Source of the DNA: Octopus sinensis
Taxonomy: Eukaryota
Assembly: GCF_006345805.1 (NCBI RefSeq)
Contig: NC_043008.1
Location: 42,904,001 to 42,968,000, forward strand
DNA: 64,000 nucleotides
Direction of reading: 5' to 3'
This document shows, piece by piece, positions 7,248 through 50,927 of the stretch. The notes below the pieces were generated by a model. That model searched no databases, had not been told where the DNA came from, and saw nothing but the letters and a program-made list of their open reading frames with translations. The position numbers and the translations under genes are program-made. Position 1 is the first letter of the stretch. Every line of letters starts with the position of its first letter.

Positions 7248-7639
7248 CACGCACATATTTATTCCAATGTATTTTTAATAGCTGTTTTCAAATCAGTGAA
7301 GGTACCATTATATTAATTTATTCAGCTCTAAACTCTTGTCTATGGAGCACTTGAAGAGATTCTATTAAATATTTCTCATTTATTTTCAGAAATATTCCTA
7401 TCTACAAATACAGGCAAAGTTGTACTCGTTGACGCAATTGGCAGTAAATAGACCATCAGCAAGTAGAAGAGATTCCAAGCCTGAATTATGCACCCAATGC
7501 TTACATATCGTAGCTTTCCACTTTGTAGCCGTAGATGAATATATTCTTGGTAAATCTGAATTTTATTCTTCGATTGAAGACGGTTGTGATGGTGTTTTAT
7601 GAATACCGTTTATTGCCAGAAACACAAAAACATCTTATT

Positions 7640-8110
7640 TTATTATATTATCTTGTATATTTTATCTTCTTGTTTCAGTCATCAAACTGCAGAAATGCTG
7701 GGGCACCACATACAAGAATATTTTCGTCTCTTTTATAAAGCCTGGTACTTATTCTATCAGTGTCCTTTACCGAAATGCTAAGTTACGGGCACGTAAACAC
7801 ACCATCACCAGTTGTCAAGCAGTGGTGGGGGCGGGGGACAAACAGACACAGAGATACACACACATACACACACACACAAATGTATATATATATGTGCATC
7901 TTTATGTCTGCGTTTGTCCCCCATCACTACATATATATATATATTCATACATACACAGACATATACAACGGCATCCTTTTAGTTTCCGTATATCAAATCC
8001 ACTCAGAAGGGTTTGGCCGACCCGAGGCTATAGCAGAAGACATTTGGCCAAGGTGCCACGCAGTGAGAATGAACTCGGAAGCTTGTGGTTATGAAGCGAA
8101 CGTCCCACGA
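7640..8110 (-). mobile_element. SINE family B copy with internal (CA/TA) microsatellite
   Basis: Blocks gtaaacac.cc..ca.ttgtcaagc, caaatccactca.aagg.ttgg, ccaaggtgccacgcagtg are shared with copies at 45665-46640, 49625, 53068 and 57680. Confidence 0.8.
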
Positions 8111-10203
8111 AACAGCTACGCCTGCACCTATAAGTGGTAAGAATGAAATTGTTTTGGGTTAGATAGTTGATTGTTTCTGGTTGTAGCATTCAAAGATAAA
8201 CACAACATTGTTTCATAGAGATGACTTCACAACAAGCAGAGTTCAAAACTGGAAGATTAAAAATCTAATTTTGGAAAAATACACGAAAACCGTTGGCGAT
8301 GTCTGTATGTCTCCCTATTATGTGGCGGCCATCTTACACTCGATCCATTGCTTATTTAACTCAGCCATTTTAACTTCATCACTATCATACTTCAACTAGA
8401 ACTGATTTAGCCAGGAAAAGTGGATGGATTTTCATTTATGACTCACCTTTCTACTTGATCCCTGAAAACATTCCACTTATTTTCCTTTTTCGACATGAAT
8501 TCTTTAATTGGGATTGAAATATCGATATACAATGGGAAGTCCCAACCCGTCCCCTGCTCAGCATTTGACAGGCATTATCTTCGTGTCAATGAAACGGCAG
8601 TAATGTGTAAACATGGCGGAAATGTAGGTGGGTATTGAATATCGATAATAGCCTTCAGACTGATGCTCGAATTTAACAGTTGGTGGTTGTATGAGAAACA
8701 AAAGAAAGATACGCAATTATTTAAAGACAATTCCTCTCATAAGAGTCCTGTTTATCACATTCTAACAGGAAGAGATTTTAATTAATTAATTATTGTAATC
8801 AAAACCAGGAGGTTCGACAATATTGGATTTTGTTTCTCACATAAACTCGTGTCAAAGTGTCTTCAATTACATAAAGGTAACATGGAGACACGGGAAGATA
8901 ACTCCTACTTTACTCAGAGCGAGTGTTTATATCGTTATCCCGATGCTTCTCTGGAGGATTAGCTATCAACCATAATGACTGTGTTAGCAATAACTATTGT
9001 CCATTCCAAAATGGTAATTTTTAGATAAAATGGTTAGTTTCTGTTGTTGAGTATTTAGTTTCTATCTGTTACATTTGGGCTTATAATCCTCCTGGGTCCA
9101 CTCAGCTTTTCATTCCTTCTTAGATCGATAAAATAATTATCATTATTACACTGGACTACTTTCAGCGCCACCAATGGTAAATTCCTAAAAGTGTTCTGTG
9201 AGTTTAGTGACAAAAGTAGTTTTAAATGGCGTTTTGTGGGAGAATAAACTTTGTCTCCTTACATGAAACCACATCATTTCAATCCTAGTAAATATTTCCC
9301 ATTCTGCAAACTTTAAATTTCTCAATGTCTGAACAATGACACTTCCAACAATTCTACTCTCTCCACCCATTCAGAGCGCCCTGTTTCAGTGTATCAATCC
9401 ATCTTCACAAACTCAGTCCATGAATAAAAGAAACACTCCATCTTGAAAACGATTGAATCACTTTTATTTGTTTTCCTCAACAAACAACTTTATTGTCCGA
9501 TGTAAATAATTTTCCTTTCAGTTATAAAACCAACAGACTTCGATTAGTCGACCGAACATTTACCGTTCGTCAAATAAATTTGTGTGACCAAAGCCATGCA
9601 AACATTTAAACCAAACTGGTTCCTTTCTTATTTTTTTCCCCTGCTTGTTCTTCATTTTTTTAACCATTTTTCTTTATGGCTATTTCTCGAAATTACGACC
9701 TGTTCAGGTTTCGCTTCCATTAAAAACTCAACCATTTACATTTCTATGATTTGTTTTGGTTCATTTTCGTTTTCTGTTATCAATTGGAATGGCGAAATGC
9801 GTTCCACCCTTCATGTGTTTGTATTCCATCAAAGAAGCAGACACAACTAGAATGTAAAATGGCGTGTATGACGCACACACTGCGTGTGCATGTGTGCATG
9901 CGCGGATGCGTGTGTGCACGCGCGTGTATGTGTGTGTGTGCGTGTGCGTTTATTGTTGTGTGTCTACAGAACAAGAGTTACACCCCCAGCGTCTCCTTCG
10001 TCTACGAAATATTTACTTCATTTATCCAACATCATAAAACGAGACGCCATATAGGACCGGAAGTCCTCCATTAGTTCTCTAAATATTATTTCACTCACCT
10101 AATTCAGATTCAAAGCTATTCAAGAGAAAACATCAAATATTTTCAAATCAAGGAAAAGAGAAGGTGAAAGAGGAATCGAAACTTTAAATCTATTGATGCT
10201 GAG

Positions 10204-16459: not shown

Positions 16460-17015
16460 TATTGAAAGTTTGTTCAATGGAAATTGTTTGAGAAGTACGG
16501 TCTTGAAAGAACACGGAAGTGGTGCCAACATGAAGCAGAAGGTATCACGGAGAATAATAGATATAAGATCTTTTGGTATTTTACAACCCAATGTGACTCA
16601 CTAATTGATGCTCGGAGACCAGACATTGTTGTAGTAGACAAAAGGAACAAGACAACCAAAATCATAGATATTGCCATTCTCAGGGATGGAAAAGATGAAA
16701 AATACAAGTTGCTAAAAGACGAAATTGCAAGAATGTGGGCAATGAAGAGAGTAACTTTCAGCTCAGTAATTGTAAGGGCACTGGGAACATTTAGAACCAG
16801 GTTTAAGAAATATGCCAGAGAAACTGCAATTGGCATGAGGGTAGAGAAAACTAAAAAAATTGATCTGTTGGGGACAGCAAGGATTTTGAAATTGGTACTT
16901 GGGTGTTAAGTATCGTGGAAAGAGATCCTGTGAGACTTTTGACAACAGGAAGCTGTTCGCTCTTAAAGAAATAACCGGAGCAAGTAAAATCAAAGGCCCT
17001 GAGAATTAAAAGGAC
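16460..17015 (+). mobile_element. R4/Dong-clade non-LTR retrotransposon 3' fragment (RLE domain and 3'UTR)
   Basis: ORF 16484-16909 has ARRPDIVVVDK, IIDIA, EKYKLLK, ALGT and LGTARIL, a PD-(D/E)xK restriction-like endonuclease C-terminus. Followed by (AAT)n. Confidence 0.85.
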
Positions 17016-17022
17016 AATAATA

Positions 17023-17069
<47 letters not shown>

Positions 17070-17104
17070 TGATGATGATGATGATGATGATCATCATCAT
17101 CATC

Positions 17105-17178
<74 letters not shown>

Positions 17179-17191
17179 CATCATCATCATC

Positions 17192-17223
<32 letters not shown>

Positions 17224-17225
17224 TA

Positions 17226-17714
17226 TCATGTACATTGTTTTGTCTTGGTATAAAAGATGGGCTACAGCAAATATTCTGCTCAATACCACAGATTTGCTTG
17301 TCAGTTGTTTGACCTTAACCAGTTGAGCATGTCCCTTAGTGGCTGGCGATATGTGCATCTCTGATCACGAGCAGAAGTAGTGGGGGAGCATCATAGCATG
17401 TGTTGAGAGGGATTCTTTGGGGTTTGAATAGTTCACCTCTGGAAACATGGGTGGTTCTTTCAACATCCTTAAACAACCCTTATTCAGGGACCGTTTGAGC
17501 GGGATGGGCTACTCAACCTGAAGAAAATTCTAACTGGGCCCCACCTGCAAGGTCATGTGCTGTTTATCTTGATATGAGATCACCATGTCGCGCACATAGG
17601 GTTGTGATGCATGTGCCTGGTGTACCTTATCAGACGGGTAGTCATGATGGGTATATTGGGCTTCGTATATTTTACCCCAGTGTCACTTTGATGGCATGAA
17701 ATGCTCTCTCACTC

Positions 17715-17715
<1 letters not shown>
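17226..17715. mobile_element. About 490-bp non-coding interspersed-type element flanked by (AAT)n on both sides
   Basis: A complex, GC-richer block with sharp boundaries inside an AAT array. No ORF and no tRNA box recognised. Confidence 0.5.
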
Positions 17716-17741
<26 letters not shown>

Positions 17742-17745
<4 letters not shown>

Positions 17746-18330
17746 GTGGGAATACAAAGCACCTCCAGTGCTCGGAAAAGGACCACATCTCACTCCACTG
17801 GAACATCACCATTCAAACTGACAGAAAGATAGATGCAAATAGGCCAGACATTATATTGAAAGACTTCAGACAAAAATCCTGCCTCCTCATTCATATGACT
17901 CCCAATCGATATCAAAAACTGAGCAAATATAAAGATCTTGAAATAGAAATTAGTAAAATGTGGAACATGAAGACTAAAACAATACCTGTTGTCGTAGGTA
18001 CGCTAGGAATGATAGCAAAAGGGGATGATTGTTACCTAGCTCAGATACCAGAAAACCTGAAAATGGCAGAAATTCAAAAGATAGTGTTTGTGGGAACTGC
18101 CCATATCGTACGTAAAATTCTGACTTTGTAATCCCAAATTTTAAAACGAACTCATAATTTTCTAATGTTTTCTTAAACATTCACCAGAACAATACTATGA
18201 GAAAAAAACAAATATATGGCACCCCAGGCATAACACCAACATGAACTTCTAACTTGTCTCTTGAGGTCTCTGGGTAAGACTTGGAGCCAACTTGTACAAA
18301 TACAAAGCAAAAGTCAAACATAATTGTAAT
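17742..18330 (+). mobile_element. R4/Dong-clade 3' fragment (second subfamily)
   Basis: KLSKYKDLEIEISKMWNMKTKTIPVVVGTLG...GTAHIVRKIL, then 3'UTR and TAA repeats. The 5' junction lies in (AAT)n. Confidence 0.85.
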
Positions 18331-18334
18331 AATA

Positions 18335-19965
18335 AACTGAAGACCTCACATTCAGTGGTGTTGGATGTTGACACAGTCATAAAATAACTCGAGCAGGAAG
18401 AAACTTACAAATACCTCGGAATAAATGAGGGTTCTGGCATTCAGCATGTGAGTATGAAAGAGAAGATCAGGAAGAAGTGTTACAGGAGAGTTCGAGCAGT
18501 TCTGAAATATGAGTTAAATGCACGTAACAAGGTGTTAGTTATAAATTCCTTTGCATTTTCGGTTGTTATTTACAGTTTCAATGTATTGAACTGGATTGGC
18601 AGGAAAATCCGTAAGATGCTGACTTGCAATAAGATGCATCATCCAAAGGCAGCCGCAGATCATCTTTACCTACCCAAAGATCAGGAAGGTCGAGGCTTGA
18701 CCCAATTTGAAATCGCCTACAAAACCACCTCAATTGGATTTGCAAAATATCTTGAAATATTTAACGATTGGATGCTAAAGCTCGTTGAAAACCACGGGGA
18801 ACGTAAGATGTTTCATCCTGTTATGAAGGAGAGCAATATATTTTCAAGTGAGTTTATGCATAAATACCCAGGCTGAACAGCATGAGGGAAGTGCAGCAAC
18901 TGTAGTTGCAAAGAAGGTGAAATCAATAGCAAAGCAAAATGCGTTTGAACATTGGTTGATAGGTGAGAACATAAACCCTGCATGGCAAATATGTGACCCG
19001 TAGCAAACAAGCTGATGTAAACCAGAAGCACACCCATCAGTGGTTATGGAGCTCAGGGTTAAAGGCAGAGAGTGAAGGATTTATCTTGGCTTCCTAAGAT
19101 CAGAGCTTATTGACCCGGAACTATCAGACCAATGTGATAAAAAATGGTATAGACCAAAAGTTCCGATACTGCAACGATAGAATAAAAACAGTGGATCAGC
19201 TAATCTCTTGATGTAAGGTTTTAGCACCTGTAGAGTAGAAATCAAGACATGACAGATTTGGCCAATATCTACATTGGATAATATGTCGGCATTATAAAGT
19301 CAAAGCTGCTGATAAATGGTACACGTACTGCCTTGAGGCTGTAACCGAGGGAGAAAATGTAACTATTCTTTGGGATTTTCCAGTATGTACAGACCGGACC
19401 ATCAGAGCAAATAAATCAGATGTTGTTGTGAAAGACCAAAACAATAAAGTCTGTTTACTGATTGACATGAGAACACCCTGTGACCATAATATCTCGGTAA
19501 AAGAATTTGATAAGCTCAGCAAATATAAAGATTTGCTAATCGAAATGGAAAAGATGTGGCATCTCAAGATGGTTACAATACCAGTGATTGTATGAGCACT
19601 TGGAATGATTAAAAAAGGAACCGAAAATTATTTAAGAATGATCCCTGGCTTACCATCCCTGCAGGAAATGTAAAAGATTATCTCAACTGGTACGTCACAC
19701 ATATTGAGAAGAGATTTGTCGCTGGGAAATTCCTTCCCCACCTTTATTTGTTTACTGTTCTATTTAAAAAATTTTTTTCCTTTTTCTCTCTGTCTTCACC
19801 TTTTTCTCTATCACATGACTCTCTAAATGAACAATGTGGCGTGCTTGTTTTAATGGCCATACCAATGTTTACGGTATGTTTGTCTGCTCTAGGTGTCAGG
19901 AAGACACTCGGCAAGAAATGGAAACCGAATTGAAAGAAGATGCAAATGAAAATAATAATGATAAT
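18335..19965 (+). mobile_element. R4/Dong-clade 5'-truncated copy (RT C-terminus, degenerate Zn knuckle, RLE), pseudogenised
   Basis: TYKYLGI, HHPKAAADHLYLP..GRGL, RHD, KSDVVVKD, LLIDM, KLSKYKDLLIE, GTSHILRR with several stops and frameshifts. Ends in (AAT)n. Confidence 0.9.
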
Positions 19966-43372: not shown

Positions 43373-43629
43373 GTAAAAATAGTGACAATTACTCGGTAAC
43401 CAAGATAAAACTCTGGTGGAAATCCACACCACCATCTCTTCGGTTATCTGGAGATGGCCAGATAACCGAAGAGATGGTGTTGTGGATTTCCACTTCAGCA
43501 TCTGAAACTCAGAGTTTTATCTTGGCTACCGAATATTGTCACATATTATTTTACGGATAAATTCCTCTATTTACATAATATGAGGTCTCTTTCTTTGTTT
43601 ATCTTACCGTTTTTACCTTATATTATAAT

Positions 43630-43676
<47 letters not shown>

Positions 43677-44010
43677 TATATTGCAATCATCCGTGATAGA
43701 ATATTCAACAAAAAAGTACTCCTACATACATATATACATACAAACATACATACAGATATACATGAATCATGCACACACACATATACACACACACACGCGC
43801 GTGCCTTCATATATATAAATCGGGGCTAAACTGTCACTTCGCTGTCCGCTGCATATTTGTCAAAGGCGCAACTTGAAATGACATTCAGCCCCTTCGTAAA
43901 ATAAATTTAACTCTGCTCTCACTGTTGAGGCCTTTCAACAGCAGCAATTATTTGTTGTGTGTCACTCAACAAACTTAACATTAATACATACATACATACA
44001 TATATACATG

Positions 44011-44050
<40 letters not shown>

Positions 44051-44226
44051 TATGTATATAATATATATCATGTTATATCATATATTAATTTTTTTTATTA
44101 GTACTTTAATATTGAGTAACGTCGATGTGTGATTTATATGAATAGATCTATGCACATAGATTTGTATACACACTGCACCACATACACACACACACATATA
44201 TACATACTGTGTATATATATATATGC

Positions 44227-44263
<37 letters not shown>

Positions 44264-44310
44264 ATATATGTATTATATTATATATATATATATATTATAT
44301 AATATATATA

Positions 44311-44357
<47 letters not shown>

Positions 44358-44769
44358 ATGTACATACTTATAAGACAATATATTTGTAACGGTTTCTATT
44401 CAATAAAATATTCGTTGATTCCCTTTGTTCGACATGTTTCCCCGTTGCTCGCATCGATCATCGATCTTGTAATCTTTACATAACAATTTCAAACTCAACA
44501 TTTTGCTAGCTAAATAAATGCCAGATGTACAATAACCAGACATCCGTAGTATCAACATTTTAATAAGAATCTACCATTTATTAGTATTATTTTTTTTATA
44601 TATATCTTAGAACATTTTCTTTTTTCTTTTTCTTTATGTTTAAATCTCTGATTAATGTTAAAACATAACAAATATTTCAAAATTATTTCCGTTTTAAATT
44701 TCATTTTTTCTCTTATTTTTTAAACAAGAATCTTCGTTTCGTTTCAGGTTTTTTCGTTTCTGTTACCAT

Positions 44770-45448
44770 TTATCTTTTACATATATTTTCAAATATTCGG
44801 AGAAAAGCACCACGGACCTCCTGGTACGTTAACCACAGCAGCGGGTTTAGTCCGAGAAATGATATCCCTAACAAATAGAAAATATGTGGCCGGTCTGAAG
44901 GTGGCATGCAATTATCCGTCTCACAAAAGGCCATGACAGCATTTTCGCAGTTGTAGGGGAAACTCATGGCGAGGAAAAAAAAGTTGACCAAACATACGGA
45001 AAACAGCGAGTTGTGTTCACGGAACGGATACGGAAGTTGCGGTTGACCTTGTTCGTCAAACATATGGGTTCCGTCTGGAGGTTGTCGGTGATGAGGATGG
45101 AGAACCACGGTGACCAGTATGGCGAAGGTAAGACCTAGAATAATTAAGGCGGGGATGAAATACATGACAAAGGGCGAAACCATGGCGTATTCTTTGTGTA
45201 GCGCATAGACACACATTCCTGGGAAATCTGGGAAAAACTGTTTGCCTTTCACCCATATAATGATGACCAATGAAATGCCGAGCAGCCATGGAAAGATGAC
45301 CATCAGAATGAGAGCAATGACCTTCATGTTCTTCACATAACGTTTCGCATCAAGGACAAACATCAAACGATCGATGTTCATCATTACAATGACCAGAGCA
45401 GAAATACAGCTGAGGGTGACGTCCATTAAAACCCAGGCTTCACAAAAT
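44770..45448 (-). CDS. Class A GPCR, coding exon 3 (TM3-TM7, helix 8, stop)
   Basis: Acceptor ttcctttctcttttgtag|A at 45449/45448 completes the phase-2 Arg codon, giving WSLGQR-FCEAWVLMDV. Then IDRL (DRY-like), W4.50, ECL2 Cys, P5.50, FPY (P6.50), NPLLW and helix-8 RGAF. Open frame to the stop at 44770. Confidence 0.95.
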
Positions 45449-45664
45449 CTACAAAAGAGAAAGGAAATGAGAAGAAAATTAGGGAAATATTACAACGAAT
45501 GGGAGGAGAGAAGGATTGCGATCTCCATCTTCAAAATTTTTTTATTCCTCCCCATCCACATCACCCCCTTTGCCTCCTGCTTTGGAATTGCTACCTATTT
45601 GTTCATATGTATTGTATATGTATGTGTGTATGTATGTGTGTATGTATGTACGTACGTACGTTCG

Positions 45665-46640
45665 TATTCTTTTATTCTTTTACTTGTTTCAGTCATTTGA
45701 CTGTGGCCATGATGGAGCACCGCCTTTAGCCGAGGAAATCGACCCCAGGACTTATTCTTTGTAAGCCTAATACTTATTCTATCGGTCATTTTTTCGCCGA
45801 ACAGCTATATTACGGGGGACGTAAACACACCAGCATCGGTTATCAAGCGATGTGGGGGGACAAACACAGACACACAAACATATACACACATATAAATAAA
45901 TAAATAAATATATATATATATAGATAGATAGATAGATAGATATACATTTAAATGCCGCACGCTAGGAGGGACTTTTAGAGTCATAACTACCAAATATAAA
46001 CAAATCGTACCGAATGCAATTCTCGAAGCGAGTCATTTAAAAACAGAATTTAGCTCCAGATCACCTGTGATTTCGCAATCAACGCAGTATCCGCGTCCCT
46101 GCTCGTCAGTGAAGCGAATTCAAGATATATCATGTTTATTCATGATATAGCTTGAATTCGCTTCACTGACGAGCAAGGGACGCGGATACTGCGTTGATTG
46201 CGAAATCACAGGTGATCTGGAGCTAAATTCTGTTTTTAAATGACTCGCTTCGAGAATTGCATTCGGTACGATTTGTTTATATTTGGTAGTTATGACTTTA
46301 AAAGTCCCTCCTAGCGTGCGGCATTTATGTGTAATAATGCCCTCTATATAATATAAATAAATATTTTCAAGTGAAAAAATTTATAGATTTTTTCTCTTAT
46401 GAGGTTTTTCACGCTAACTACTTGATAATTTCTTATTAAGATTTTATCCTATTTTTTAAATATATATACATACATATATACTACGGGATTCTTTCATTTT
46501 CCGTCTAGCATATCCACTCACAAGGCTTTGGTTGGGCCGAGGCTATAATAGAAGACATTTGCCCAAGGTGCCACGCAGTGGGACTGAACCCGGAACCATG
46601 TGGTTGATAAGCAAGCTACTTACCATACAGCCACTGCTGC
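45665..46640 (-). mobile_element. SINE family B copy split by an insertion (halves about 45665-45890 and 46480-46640)
   Basis: The 3' and 5' halves match the intact copies at 49625-49990 and 53068-53445 and are colinear. Confidence 0.75.
45949..46327. repeat. Near-perfect palindrome: arms of 186 and 187 bp, 6-nt loop (TTTATT, 46135-46140)
   Basis: Arms are reverse complements with 2 substitutions and 1 single-base indel by my count. TA at both outer ends. Confidence 0.95.
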
Positions 46641-46701
46641 GTTTGTGTGATGTACGTATGTATGCATACACACACATACTATTAATATATGCATACATAC
46701 A

Positions 46702-46740
<39 letters not shown>

Positions 46741-47517
46741 CATGCTTGTACACACACGCACGCACCCACACACACGCACCCACACACATATATATGCGTG
46801 TGTGTGTATGGTAGAGATATTGCTGTTTAGTGGCAAATGTAGGCTCCAAGTATTTTTTCTTTAAATTCTTGCGATTCTGGCTTCATACATCTGAGAATGT
46901 AGTCGCCTGTCTGCACCTACAAGCCTTCTGGTAACATGGAGCAGAGGGAAATTCTTATTAAATATATATGTATATATGCATATACACCCATGCATACACG
47001 CATACACACATCCACACACGCGCGTGCGTGCACCCCCATACATATATATACATATATATATATATACAATACATATAATGTTTAGTTTTAGGTCCTTTCT
47101 TCTCCAACCTTTCCTTCCCGGGAATTATTATGCAGCGTTTATCGCGGCATTAAATCTTAATTAAACATGTTTCACAACATTATATAACATCCCCAATTGT
47201 TTACGTCTAAAATAACATTGTTTGAAATTATCGATCGAGACCGCCTTTCTTCTATTCATGCCACATTATAGAGTTGCCATCGGAATTCCTTGTTTTGTCT
47301 TCGTAGCGTTCTCTTGTTTGTTTTAAAGACGTCTTGCTTAATAAGGAATCTATGGCGCTAATCGACGAGGTATTGGTGCGAGTTCTTTGAAATATTGCGA
47401 GTTGATATAGAATACAATATTTAATTGAGTCACATTACACATACACGCCTATATATATACATATACATATATGTTTGTATGGTCATATATATATATGTAT
47501 GCATATATATATATATC

Positions 47518-47570
<53 letters not shown>

Positions 47571-47633
47571 TATATACATATATATATATACATATATATA
47601 TGCATACATACATATATATATAACCATACAAAC

Positions 47634-47673
<40 letters not shown>

Positions 47674-47742
47674 GTAAATATATATATATACATACATACA
47701 TACATATATATACACACACACACACACACCACACACACACAC

Positions 47743-47784
<42 letters not shown>

Positions 47785-48619
47785 TATATACATACGATGA
47801 TTGATCTCTTTGATATGTTTCTAGAGGAACGAATTGTAAAGTCGAATTAGATATTGGCAGATCAGTTGATCGTATTGACTTTGAGATATCGATGTGCCGA
47901 GTGTGATAGTCGTTATCTGGCTCTGTGTGTTTAGAACCGAAGAATGGTAAGAATTAGACGGAATATTTGTGAAGTCATTGTTTGAGGGTCAACCACTGCA
48001 AGACTATTGTTCTCTTGTTCTCTGCATTGGCACACATTTTTCTCCTGCGCCCTCTGCCTCCTCCTCATTCCCTCCCCCTCTCCTCCTCTTTTTATGAGTC
48101 CATATTTTTGGCAGCACACACACATCACTCATACACACGCATAGACATCTCTCTCTTTCTCAGTGTATACAGATATACACATACATTTACGTGCCTGTAT
48201 ATGTATGTATATATATGTATATATATATATACATACACACATATATATATATATATATACATACATGCATATATACATATGCATCCATTTATATATATAT
48301 ATATACATATGTATGTCTTACACTATATATAAAAGTTAATACATTATACATACAACATACACATACATATATATTTGTATGTGTGTGTGTGTGCACGGGT
48401 TCGCATGTGTGTTAGAACAAACAGGATGAAGAGAAAACAATACATGCCTGTATATATATTTTAATGATTATAATCGGCAGAGTTCGCAGAGTGACTTGAG
48501 TGTCGAAAACTTCGTTCATGGGATGTAATTGATCTCTTATACGTCCCATGAAACACGAAACACTCGGCCCTTGAGTTACATTGTAATTCCCGATTAAACG
48601 TGAAAATAAAAGTGATCTG

Positions 48620-49330
48620 AGCATTGACAATGGCGAGTGTTACATCCTTCCATGTGCATATTAACCAAGTTGGCAATCAAATGCAGGTGGTGGACCGGAT
48701 GGAGTCTTAGAACATTCAGAAGAAGAACGCAGAAAACCATGATGGTCTTCTGGAGGATATTTCTCCTAAGCTGCCTTGACTAGTGTTCCCAACTACGGCC
48801 ACCACACCGCGTGAAATTAATAGCGGAACTTGGTGCAGTCAAGCGAATCTACACGAAGAAGATAGCCGTAATGCAGCGAATTAGCCACTAGGAAAGATTG
48901 AAGAGGCTAAGACTTTACTTCCTGGAAAAAAAAAAGGTGGGAAAGAGATGCTGCAATATACATCTTGAAGATTCTGGAAGTAATTGTCCCAAACATTGGC
49001 ACTGAAAGTTATACAAATGCCAGAACAGGGCATCATTGCTTAGTGCTTAAAATCCTTGCCCTGGCGTCAAAATACAGGACCAGATATTGCAATAGCTTGC
49101 GATTCAAGGGATTCAAAGAATGCCGGCGTCTTCAAGACTAAACTGGATATCCTACTGCCAAGAGTCCCAGATGAACCAACTTCACAACAGGAAGATGTAA
49201 TAAGGGGAACAGCATCAAACTCCCTCGTTCTCCAAAAGCCAGGTATGAAAGGAAAATTAATGAAGGGGCAGCACGCCATTTGGCGGTGCTCCAGAATGGC
49301 CACAAAACTTGAGCGGAATTAATAAAAAAT
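48620..49330 (+). mobile_element. CR1/L2-group LINE 3' fragment, antisense within GPCR intron 2
   Basis: Broken frames give LRTFRRR, ERLK.LRLY, YI.KILE..VPN.G, YCNSL.FKG and FKTKLD.LL..VPDEP, typical of a post-RT C-terminus. Confidence 0.75.
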
Positions 49331-49624
49331 ACAGGTATACTCATTTACTACATAGGTATATATCTACGTATGTAAAGTTGAAAAAGTAAAGCGCTTACAC
49401 ACAAAATATACACTTTTACGAAATCATTTTCGCAAAGATTTTTCTTTAAAACAATTTTTTTAGAAAATATTAAAAACTAAACAAATCTTTCTTTAATTAT
49501 GGTGGCTGTGCGGAGTATATTTTGCAGAAGCTTTTAAATATGTACACACACACGTACACACATACACGCGCACACACATACACGCACATATCACACATAC
49601 ACGCACATATACACACATATCTTT

Positions 49625-49990
49625 TATCTTGTTTTAATTGTTTCAATCATTAGACTGCGGCCATGCTGGGGCACCACTTGGAAGAATTTGTAGCCGAATG
49701 AATCGACACAAAGACTTAAATTTTAAAGCCTGGTAATTATTCTATTGCTCTTTTTTGCTGAACCGCTAAGTTACGGGGACACAAACATACCAACGCCGGT
49801 TGTCAATCGCTAGTGGATGATAGAAAGATACACACATGCACACATATTTATACGAAGGGTTTCTTTCAGTTTCCGCTTGCCAAATCCACTGATAAGGCTT
49901 CGGGATGTTTGAGGCTACAGCAGAAGACTGAACCCCGAAACCATGCGGCTGGGAAGCGAAGTTCTTACCACACAGCCACACCTGCACCAG
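49625..49990 (-). mobile_element. SINE family B copy starting about 27 nt inside GPCR intron 2
   Basis: Family B blocks from ttgtttcaatcattagactgcggccatg to cttaccacacagccac. Confidence 0.8.
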
Positions 49991-50017
49991 TATACACCTG
50001 ACGGATCATATACATAC

Positions 50018-50337
50018 CTTTGTCCCAGACTCCATTTGTGTAGATCATCATAAACGGCAAATGGTAGATTTACAACACACATCAAAAGCTGGATGGTGGT
50101 CAAACTGAGTATGTACAAGGTAATAACCAGTCGGCGTGCGCTTTTCGATGAAACGAGGGCAATGATGAGTATTAAGTTGGCAAGAAATCCCCAAAAGGCC
50201 AGCAGCCCTTGGAAAATGACCATTCCATAACGAGTTTTACCGTCTTCACCTTCAACAGGAATTAGTTTCCCAGCTGATGAGTTGTAGTAGAGCGTGTAGA
50301 CGTATTTGTAGCCATCGGAGTCTTCGTAGGAACCCAT
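50018..50337 (-). CDS. Class A GPCR, coding exon 2 (N-terminus, TM1, TM2, ECL1)
   Basis: Acceptor tttttcttttaccttcag|ATG at 50338/50337. Encodes TM1 (GFLANLILI, N1.50), TM2 (SLTTIQLLMCVVNLPF) and the ECL1 motif WSLG. Donor CAAAG|GTATGT at 50018/50017 is phase 2. Confidence 0.92.
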
Positions 50338-50873
50338 CTGAAGGTAAAAGAAAAATTGGTTAATGATAATGCTACTATTAATAATTATATTATATTACTA
50401 CTACTAATAATAATTATAATCACAACAATGATGATGATGATGATGATCAGCACTCAACTACCGAGGGTTCCGAGAAGTTAAATATGATAATAATGACAAT
50501 TTCTTAAATCGTCACAAGGCCAGGAATTTGTTGAGGAGGTGGATGGTGGGAAGAGGCGTTATATGAAAAGTTGACTGAGGTGGAATTTGAACTCACAAAG
50601 TGAAGAGACGTAATCAAATACAAATGATCTAATATAACAATATCATCTCCATTACTCCATCTAATGCAAACAAACCTACGAGAGCTGGTCGTTGTAGATA
50701 CTAGAAATGGTTTGTATTGATACATTAGTCGCCATTGTAAACTTAATCGAAGGATTAACGATAATCTGAAAAGGTTAACATATATATATAACGCATCGTA
50801 TTCAGTTCTTGTACATTCGAGTTTGTAAAATATGGCCAGGGAAGGCCATAGACTGTCACAGGGCAGACGTTAC

Positions 50874-50927
50874 CGGGTGGAGACAGAGGTATGTTTCGTT
50901 GCTTAGTGAGAGGTTAGGGCCATTCAT
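50874..50927 (-). CDS. Class A (rhodopsin-like) GPCR, putative coding exon 1 (MNGPNLSLSNETYLCLHP)
   Basis: Not in the ORF track. Minus strand reads ATG at 50927, then 18 codons ending CCG|GTAACGT (phase-0 donor at 50873). Phase matches the acceptor directly before 50337. It encodes two N-glycosylation sequons (NLS, NET), typical of GPCR N-termini. Confidence 0.75.

Follow-up and report, generated by a model that had tools for sequence, protein, structure and literature searches.

A single-copy octopus receptor close to the monoamine receptors belongs to a molluscan and annelid family with altered class A activation motifs

Results

A two-exon receptor gene on the minus strand

[quoted passage not shown] The protein is encoded by two coding exons (50337..50018 joined to 45448..44770; Table 1) and is 100% identical to XP_036363774-777, "dopamine receptor 1-like [Octopus sinensis]", for which four NCBI transcript accessions are listed, all with one identical encoded protein. 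The gene is already annotated in NCBI, under a name that is misleading.

Exon 1 alone matches the Pfam family 7tm_1 with 27 bits (E 3.8e-06). The first exons of O. bimaculoides and Argonauta are also 320 nt long, with equal phase and a GT donor, and the intron lies at the same codon position and in the same phase, with GT..AG ends, in both species (2466 nt in O. bimaculoides and 990 nt in Argonauta). The O. sinensis intron is rich in TA/CA microsatellites and holds a 158-nt inverted repeat. The start codon is immediately preceded by a splice acceptor, and this arrangement (...ccttcag/ATG) is kept in three octopods, O. sinensis, O. bimaculoides and Argonauta. Because the CAG acceptor adjoins the ATG, it is most likely that at least one non-coding exon of the 5' untranslated region lies upstream; we looked for such exons upstream and located none.

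The first-pass annotation had proposed a spliced open reading frame (ORF) of 350 codons, beginning with a separate 18-codon exon. The uninterrupted two-exon receptor stands, and the first 18 residues of the longer model do not, as they have no support from orthologues or mRNA. The annotated proteins of three octopods begin at the downstream Met, an in-frame TGA lies two codons before the ATG in all 11 of the Sepia mRNA contigs examined (see below), and the 2 kb that precede the ATG in O. bimaculoides and Argonauta contain no counterpart of the exon. We use the 332-residue numbering throughout; adding 18 gives the numbering of the longer model, so that D116 is its D134.

Table 1. Features of the receptor gene and its intron, in window positions. 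TM, transmembrane helix; ECL, extracellular loop; decimal numbers are Ballesteros-Weinstein positions.
Feature	Position	Strand	Description
18-codon first exon of the first-pass model	50927..50874	-	ATG.../gtaacg; unsupported as coding
Splice acceptor before ATG	50338..50355	-	Polypyrimidine tract and CAG, directly adjoining the start codon
Coding exon 1	50018..50337	-	320 nt; ATG 50337-50335; Met1-Gln106 and two bases of Arg107
Exon 1, content			Tyr/acid-rich N-terminus, sequon N19-S-S, TM1 (N54=1.50), TM2 (Q83=2.50, P92=2.59), ECL1 (W102)
Intron	45449..50017	-	4569 nt, phase 2; donor AAG/gtatgt, acceptor ttttgtag/
Intronic inverted repeat	45943..46333		Arms 45943-46100 and 46176-46333, 158 nt, 98% complementary, 75 nt apart
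Coding exon 2	44770..45448	-	679 nt including TAA 44772-44770; TM3 to helix 8
Exon 2, TM3 to ECL2			C109 (3.25), W112 (3.28), D116 (3.32), D133-R134-L135, W161 (4.50), C186 (45.50)
Exon 2, TM5 to TM6			S198 (5.42), P206 (5.50), T214 (5.58), E251 (6.30), M268-S269-F270-P271
Exon 2, TM6 to end			Y272 (6.51), N276 (6.55), C282/C287 (ECL3), N308-P309-L-L-W312, C330 near the C-terminus

Sequence and predicted fold are closest to those of monoamine receptors

Exon 2 matched PF00001 (7tm_1) with 53.5 bits (E 3.1e-14, cut-off 30.5), and a PF00001 match is also precomputed for the full protein. When exon 2 was compared with the sequences in the PDB, the best 60 listed matches were all aminergic receptors, a grouping that here includes muscarinic and histamine receptors. 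A profile of the wider family to which the protein belongs (see below) also returned aminergic receptors as all of its top 60 PDB matches (E 1e-45 to 1e-40), among them the serotonin (5-HT) receptors 5-HT1A/1B, 5-HT2 and 5-HT4, the adrenergic receptors alpha1B, alpha2 and beta1/2, and the dopamine receptors D1 and D2/D4. The AlphaFold2 model, which was built from the family alignment, has a pLDDT of 80.8 and a pTM of 0.83 and contains seven long helices and helix 8 (316-331). The top 50 Foldseek matches to this model (alpha1A, beta1, beta2, D1, D4/D5, 5-HT1A/1D and histamine H2) were all monoamine-type, with target TM-scores of 0.8-0.9 for GPCR chains without fusion partners.

The resemblance to aminergic receptors is far beyond chance, and the protein is a class A GPCR that is closest to monoamine receptors in sequence and in predicted fold, in agreement with its first description as an amine-receptor-like GPCR. 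The best matches by sequence and fold are monoamine receptors of vertebrates and insects: the alpha1A, alpha2B, beta1 and beta2 adrenergic receptors, D1 and 5-HT1A/1B/2. Identity to the monoamine receptors is nevertheless only about 20%, and the octopus protein differs from them in having a very short third intracellular loop (ICL3, about 23 residues) and a tail that stops a few residues past helix 8.

The amine-type anchor is retained and most activation switches are changed

We assigned Ballesteros-Weinstein positions from a HMMER alignment of exon 2 to the turkey beta1 adrenergic receptor (beta1AR), alpha2B and D1, and a second check in a 146-sequence alignment gave the same assignments. 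The octopus receptor has in common with the monoamine receptors the C3.25-C45.50 pair, W3.28, D3.32, S3.39, the D3.49-R3.50 motif, W4.50, S5.42, P5.50, E6.30, F6.44, P6.50, an aromatic residue at 6.51 (Y6.51), N7.49-P7.50 in TM7, helix 8 and a pair of cysteines in ECL3 (C282/C287); N1.50 (N54), V3.33 and N6.55 are also retained. D116 aligns with D3.32 of beta1AR, alpha2B and D1, and it is invariant in an alignment with relatives (A1) and in four cephalopods; C109 and C186, the cysteines of the TM3-ECL2 disulfide, are invariant in A1 as well.

Unlike the monoamine receptors, the octopus protein has Q at 2.50 (Q83) in place of D, L at 3.51 in place of Y, P and M at 5.43 and 5.46 in place of S, and T at 5.58 in place of Y. 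In TM6 and TM7 the substitutions are C6.47M, W6.48S, F6.52N, W7.40L, Y7.43I, N7.45F, S7.46L and Y7.53W, and the alignment to beta1AR adds the replacement of F8.50 by V (V318) and of the hydrophobic anchor at 34.51 in the second intracellular loop (ICL2) by K. The canonical microswitches, which are typical rather than strictly defining, are thus replaced by Q2.50, DRL, M-S-F-P, N-P-L-L-W and T5.58. Only Y6.51 remains of the aminergic aromatic set W6.48, F6.51, F6.52, W7.40 and Y7.43, the other positions being occupied by S, N, L and I. All of the retained residues and all of the substitutions that had been listed by eye in the first-pass annotation were reproduced by both alignments, and it is borne out that D3.32 is kept alongside a set of non-canonical switches.

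About 10 canonical aminergic paralogues in the octopus genome carry every one of the canonical motifs, including all five aromatic pocket residues, and the altered switches are therefore not a product of genome-wide drift.

Orthologues are intact, spliced and slowly evolving

Orthologues in O. bimaculoides (99% identity), Argonauta hians (90%) and Sepia esculenta (82-83%) are all 332 residues long and align without insertions or deletions. The switch and pocket residues are invariant across the four cephalopods, with the exception of N6.55S and G7.42S in Sepia and A3.40G in Argonauta. The gene is present as a single copy in the 2.72-Gb assembly, in which the next best match is 28% identical.

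The Sepia esculenta orthologue is found on at least 25 Logan contigs (1 + 24, for two protein records) of 1-4 kb from several accession series, and all 11 of the contigs examined contain an uninterrupted 999-nt ORF that is colinear with exon 1 and exon 2 across the octopus junction. Papers identify two of the source runs as RNA-seq of Sepia esculenta, and SRR19578100 is described in its paper as poly(A)-selected RNA-seq of Sepia esculenta larvae. In several projects, RNA-seq libraries of Sepia larvae yield full-length assembled transcripts. As these RNA-seq contigs are colinear and uninterrupted, a spliced mRNA exists in a decapodiform orthologue, and the splicing proposed for the octopus gene is matched by a spliced poly(A) transcript in Sepia. 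We also considered, as a possible record of splicing in octopus, a Logan protein of 252 residues that has 99% identity to the product of octopus exon 2. It opens with 26 residues that are unrelated to exon 1 and is therefore an unspliced or genomic read-through call, which is no evidence either way.

The pairwise ratio of nonsynonymous to synonymous divergence (dN/dS, omega) was 0.03-0.05 throughout the cephalopod comparisons; the NG86 and YN00 estimates of dS fail for Octopus-Sepia because of saturation, and omega rests on maximum likelihood and on the closer pairs. For O. sinensis and O. bimaculoides, which are not saturated, dN was 0.003 and dS was 0.07-0.10; for Octopus and Sepia, dN was 0.11 and dS was saturated at >2.3. 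An omega far from 1, intact orthologues and spliced Sepia mRNAs together exclude a young pseudogene, an outcome for which the first-pass annotation had allowed.

Across the four cephalopods, 77% of TM positions, 71% of extracellular positions and 74% of intracellular positions are invariant, the most invariant segments being TM7 (96%) and TM6 (86%). By count, conservation is roughly uniform, and we dropped an initial suspicion that loops are better conserved than helices. Among the positions that line the pocket, 24 of the 27 checked are invariant between octopus and cuttlefish, including D116 (3.32), W3.28, S5.42, Y6.51, N6.52 and Y7.39, and the segment Y10-N19 of the octopus N-terminus is likewise invariant from octopus to cuttlefish. 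ICL3 (residues 224-246) is short and is unstructured in the model, and yet 78% of its positions are invariant between octopus and cuttlefish, which looks high for such an unstructured loop and hints at a fixed intracellular partner.

Most of the altered switches are shared with a molluscan and annelid family

When 1.84 billion representatives were searched exhaustively with HMMER, 7 proteins had E values under 1e-30 and 90 had values under 1e-10, and the best non-cephalopod matches were full-length proteins of 320-400 residues that are 24-30% identical to the octopus receptor. A profile search of a 5.8-billion-protein collection with alignment A1 gave at least 5 matches and no further taxon names. 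We grouped the octopus receptor with its closest relatives under the provisional name "W7.53 family", delimited by W7.53, a residue other than Tyr at 5.58, M or L at 6.47, the motif DR(L/F) and membership in one clade; the octopus receptor has all four residue states and falls within the clade. Named members come from the scallops Argopecten (XP_069137436), Pecten (XP_033750538) and Ylistrum, from Sinanodonta (KAL3866993), Pinctada (KAK3108462), Haliotis (XP_046559082), Batillaria and Elysia, and from the annelid Owenia (CAH1797106). This taxonomic range is a lower bound taken from named records, the other rows being drawn from ENA/Logan.

A comparison of 31 landmark positions over 146 matches separated the family cleanly from canonical receptors, in which the set of aminergic motifs is complete. 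In the tree, which was an unrooted quick search with no peptide-receptor or opsin outgroup, the family formed a clade of 48 rows set apart from all sampled canonical receptors by a branch with 99% support in the SH-like approximate likelihood ratio test (SH-aLRT). Within this clade the Octopus-Sepia pair is sister (94%) to a group of 26 rows whose named members are all molluscs, and it sits on a stem of 1.39 substitutions per site, with tips of 0.04 and 0.21.

The 46 members that are not cephalopod most often have W at 7.53 (39/46) and T, I, N or S at 5.58 (38/46 together). At 6.47 there is M in 28 and L in 10, and at 3.51 there is L in 26 and F in 12. Position 2.50 is N in 20, D in 18 and Q in 4. 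D is found at 3.32 in 36 members, W at 6.48 in 33 and W at 7.40 in 38, and position 34.51 is mostly K, S or R in the family, compared with L, I or F in canonical receptors. A short ICL3, a C-x-x-C-x-P motif in ECL3 and a Tyr/acid-rich N-terminus are further points in common between the octopus receptor and these relatives. The differences are that most relatives keep W6.48 and W7.40, with N or D at 2.50, and that many lack N7.49, whereas the cephalopod protein keeps N7.49 and E6.30. The residues that distinguish the cephalopod pair from the bulk of the family are only Q2.50, S6.48, L7.40 and I7.43, which predate the split between octopus and cuttlefish.

As the switch changes are common to the 48-row clade, most of them are ancient family traits. 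The suggestion that the pattern is lineage-specific does not hold in its original form, because W7.53, the loss of Y5.58, M6.47, DRL and the loss of an acidic residue at 2.50 are common to a clade of bivalves, gastropods and an annelid. Judged from its sequences, the family would be old and uncharacterised, and either derived from or sister to the monoamine receptors. The first-pass annotation had also raised the possibility that the receptor falls in an already characterised clade with the same substitutions. It does fall in a clade that shares many of them, and we found no characterisation of that clade in the literature. A search on the family, the NPxxW signature, the member accessions and orphan aminergic terms returned no description, its coverage being incomplete and absence no proof, and the family goes unmentioned in two candidate papers, one on dopamine receptors of Sepia and one on monoamine receptors of placozoans. 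The automatic names of the relatives conflict with one another (beta-3 adrenergic-like, 5-HT5B-like, 5-HT1D-like, 5-HT1B-like and alpha-1D).

The N-termini of the family are short (median 34 residues) and contain Tyr flanked by Asp or Glu; Tyr makes up 8.5% of N-terminal residues in the family and 2.4% in canonical receptors (Mann-Whitney p 1.7e-07, uncorrected for phylogeny). As a lead only, these Tyr/acid-rich N-termini may resemble the sulfotyrosine motifs of basic-peptide receptors. In the octopus model, AlphaFold2 draws beta-strands at residues 12-19 and 24-31 of the N-terminus with low confidence.

The octopus genome carries a second receptor of the W7.53 type, a single-exon gene for 382 residues at C4:132426361-132427191 on the minus strand. 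It has D2.50, E rather than D at 3.32, R6.48 and NPLAW, and its Argonauta counterpart is automatically named "histamine H2 receptor-like". C12:35008235 is possibly a third octopus W7.53 locus, with a poor alignment.

Other features of the window

Dense TA and CA/TG microsatellites flank the receptor gene and fill its intron (43600-44360, 46650-46720, 47450-47794, 48198-48314 and many more), and most of the window's long spurious ORFs arise from them. The ORF translations of the two arms of the intronic inverted repeat mirror each other, and the arms would form a long hairpin in the pre-mRNA. The repeat probably consists of two head-to-head copies of a short interspersed element, outside the coding gene. 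Similar translated stretches occur at 46460-46864 and at 7603-8140, suggesting copies of one interspersed repeat family. On the plus strand at 16466-18876, three ORFs of 143-162 residues look mobile-element-like by eye, and two of them have a similar stretch containing RPDI; none of the three has a Pfam match at E 0.01.

Discussion

We think it fairly likely that the octopus protein is an orphan receptor whose ligand is endogenous, conserved and cationic and whose activation mechanism is rewired, and that it is the coleoid single-copy member of an old family. Such a receptor would reside in the plasma membrane, and D3.32 (D116) would provide the counter-charge for its ligand, which would most likely be a small amine, although a basic peptide may be possible given the Tyr/acid-rich N-terminus. 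The rewired core would keep the R3.50-E6.30 pair, F6.44, P5.50, P6.50 and N7.49-P7.50. The sodium pocket of D2.50, N7.45 and S7.46 would be replaced by Q2.50, F and L, in which N7.49 could pair with Q2.50; T and W would stand in for the Y5.58/Y7.53 pair, and Ser for the toggle W6.48. Sodium modulation would not be expected. The coupling profile would be expected to be atypical, and it is plausible that the Lys at the ICL2 anchor (34.51) and the missing tyrosines make it so; altered signalling is more probable than none. A burst of change on the cephalopod stem, followed by stasis for something like hundreds of millions of years, points to a fixed functional shift.

Several points weigh against this reading. 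The transcript evidence comes from Sepia, and ligand, coupling and localisation are read from the sequence and the model. D3.32 is not exclusive to amine receptors: in opioid, somatostatin and melanin-concentrating hormone (MCH) receptors it binds the cationic group of a peptide, so its presence need not mean a small amine. (In neither sequence nor fold are these the receptors closest to the octopus protein, and their switches are canonical.) The aminergic-pocket residues W6.48, F6.52, W7.40, Y7.43, S5.43 and S5.46 are missing, and the joint loss of D2.50, Y5.58, Y7.53, W6.48 and the ICL2 anchor fits a receptor that is ligand-independent or does not use G proteins equally well. The canonical class with which the family was compared was itself partly defined by four motifs, which makes its 67/67 at those motifs circular, the other columns being free of this. 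With an unrooted quick tree and a long cephalopod stem, the family may lie inside the monoamine clade or beside it.

The protein could instead be an atypical receptor that does not signal through G proteins, whether as a scavenger, as an arrestin-biased receptor, as a constitutive or ligand-independent one, or as a partner or chaperone of another GPCR; we consider this unlikely overall, while giving it more weight than any other alternative. It would account for the loss of the acidic sodium-site residue, Y5.58, Y7.53, W6.48 and F8.50 (V318) and for the Lys at 34.51, where canonical relatives have L, I or F, and a short ICL3 that is 78% invariant would suit a fixed protein partner. Altered motifs for activation or coupling likewise occur beside a conserved ligand pocket in atypical chemokine receptors and further non-canonical receptors of class A, and the acidic, Tyr-rich N-terminus of the octopus protein recalls chemokine-receptor N-termini, but the two are related only as class A receptors, and DR and E6.30 are retained in octopus. 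R3.50, E6.30, N7.49-P7.50, helix 8 and the C-terminal Cys are not only retained but invariant, and the invariance of 24 of 27 pocket positions speaks for the importance of ligand recognition. Bitter-taste receptors and nematode chemoreceptors lack the class A microswitches and still signal via G proteins, so motif loss does not show that a receptor is silent. A further reading is that the family has abandoned amine recognition for a basic peptide or protein; a cationic peptide would be captured by a sulfotyrosine-type acidic N-terminus, and D3.32 would bind its amine or its Arg/Lys. The short family N-termini with Tyr beside Asp/Glu (enriched as given above), the invariance of octopus Y10-N19 as far as cuttlefish and the loss of the aminergic aromatic pocket residues fit such a receptor. 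We nonetheless hold it to be improbable, given that the likeness in sequence and fold is to aminergic rather than peptide receptors, that W3.28 and D3.32 are kept and that the protein has a short ECL2; composition or a link to glycosylation could explain the excess of Tyr, and sulfation is only putative.

A chemosensory receptor for environmental amines, located in the suckers or the olfactory organ and comparable to the trace amine-associated receptors (TAARs), has a similarly slim chance of being correct. The TAARs are, like the octopus receptor, amine-type class A receptors with D3.32, which the octopus protein keeps in an otherwise unusual pocket, and Pfam gives weak matches to Srsx, a family of nematode chemoreceptors. 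Expansion and fast evolution are typical of chemoreceptor families, and TAARs keep canonical switches and form expanded, fast-evolving clusters. The octopus gene, by contrast, has altered switches, is single-copy with neither tandem nor dispersed expansion, and has one-to-one orthologues of equal length in Octopus, Argonauta and Sepia that evolve very slowly (omega 0.03-0.05); full-length transcripts are present in the Sepia larval RNA-seq of several projects. The chemosensory role put forward in the first-pass annotation is disfavoured on these grounds. That the protein is a true D1-type dopamine receptor, as its NCBI name implies, or a young pseudogene, is hardly credible. The automatic name "dopamine receptor 1-like" and the presence of D1 structures among the best PDB matches are what speak for D1, and they are countered by the 99% SH-aLRT branch that sets the protein apart from canonical receptors including insect Dop1, by an S-P-M sequence at 5.42/5.43/5.46 in place of the TM5 serine triad, and by the mutual inconsistency of the relatives' automatic names. 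The omega values, intact orthologues and mRNAs exclude a pseudogene.

For the family as a whole, a bolder proposal, which we regard as doubtful, is that it constitutes an undescribed, ancient lophotrochozoan class that split from the monoamine receptors, kept D3.32 and activates without the D2.50 sodium site, without Y5.58/Y7.53 and, in cephalopods, without W6.48. Its ligand might then be a cationic peptide or another non-classical transmitter, captured by a sulfotyrosine-like N-terminus, and the cephalopod receptor would have been re-tuned on the coleoid stem. If this is true, the family would be a naturally occurring test of an alternative route of class A activation.

The database names carried by these proteins (dopamine receptor 1-like, beta-3 adrenergic-like, 5-HT5B-like and histamine H2-like) are misleading, and comparative studies should leave family members out of their counts of dopamine, adrenergic and serotonin receptors. 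Should the octopus protein prove to be an ordinary orphan whose ligand is modest, the finding would be of interest for annotation only. If it signals, it would show class A activation without four of the five textbook microswitches in a protein that keeps an aminergic-type anchor. It would then be a useful test of models of GPCR activation and sodium modulation, and it would represent an unrecognised transmitter-receptor pair for cephalopod and, more broadly, molluscan neurobiology.

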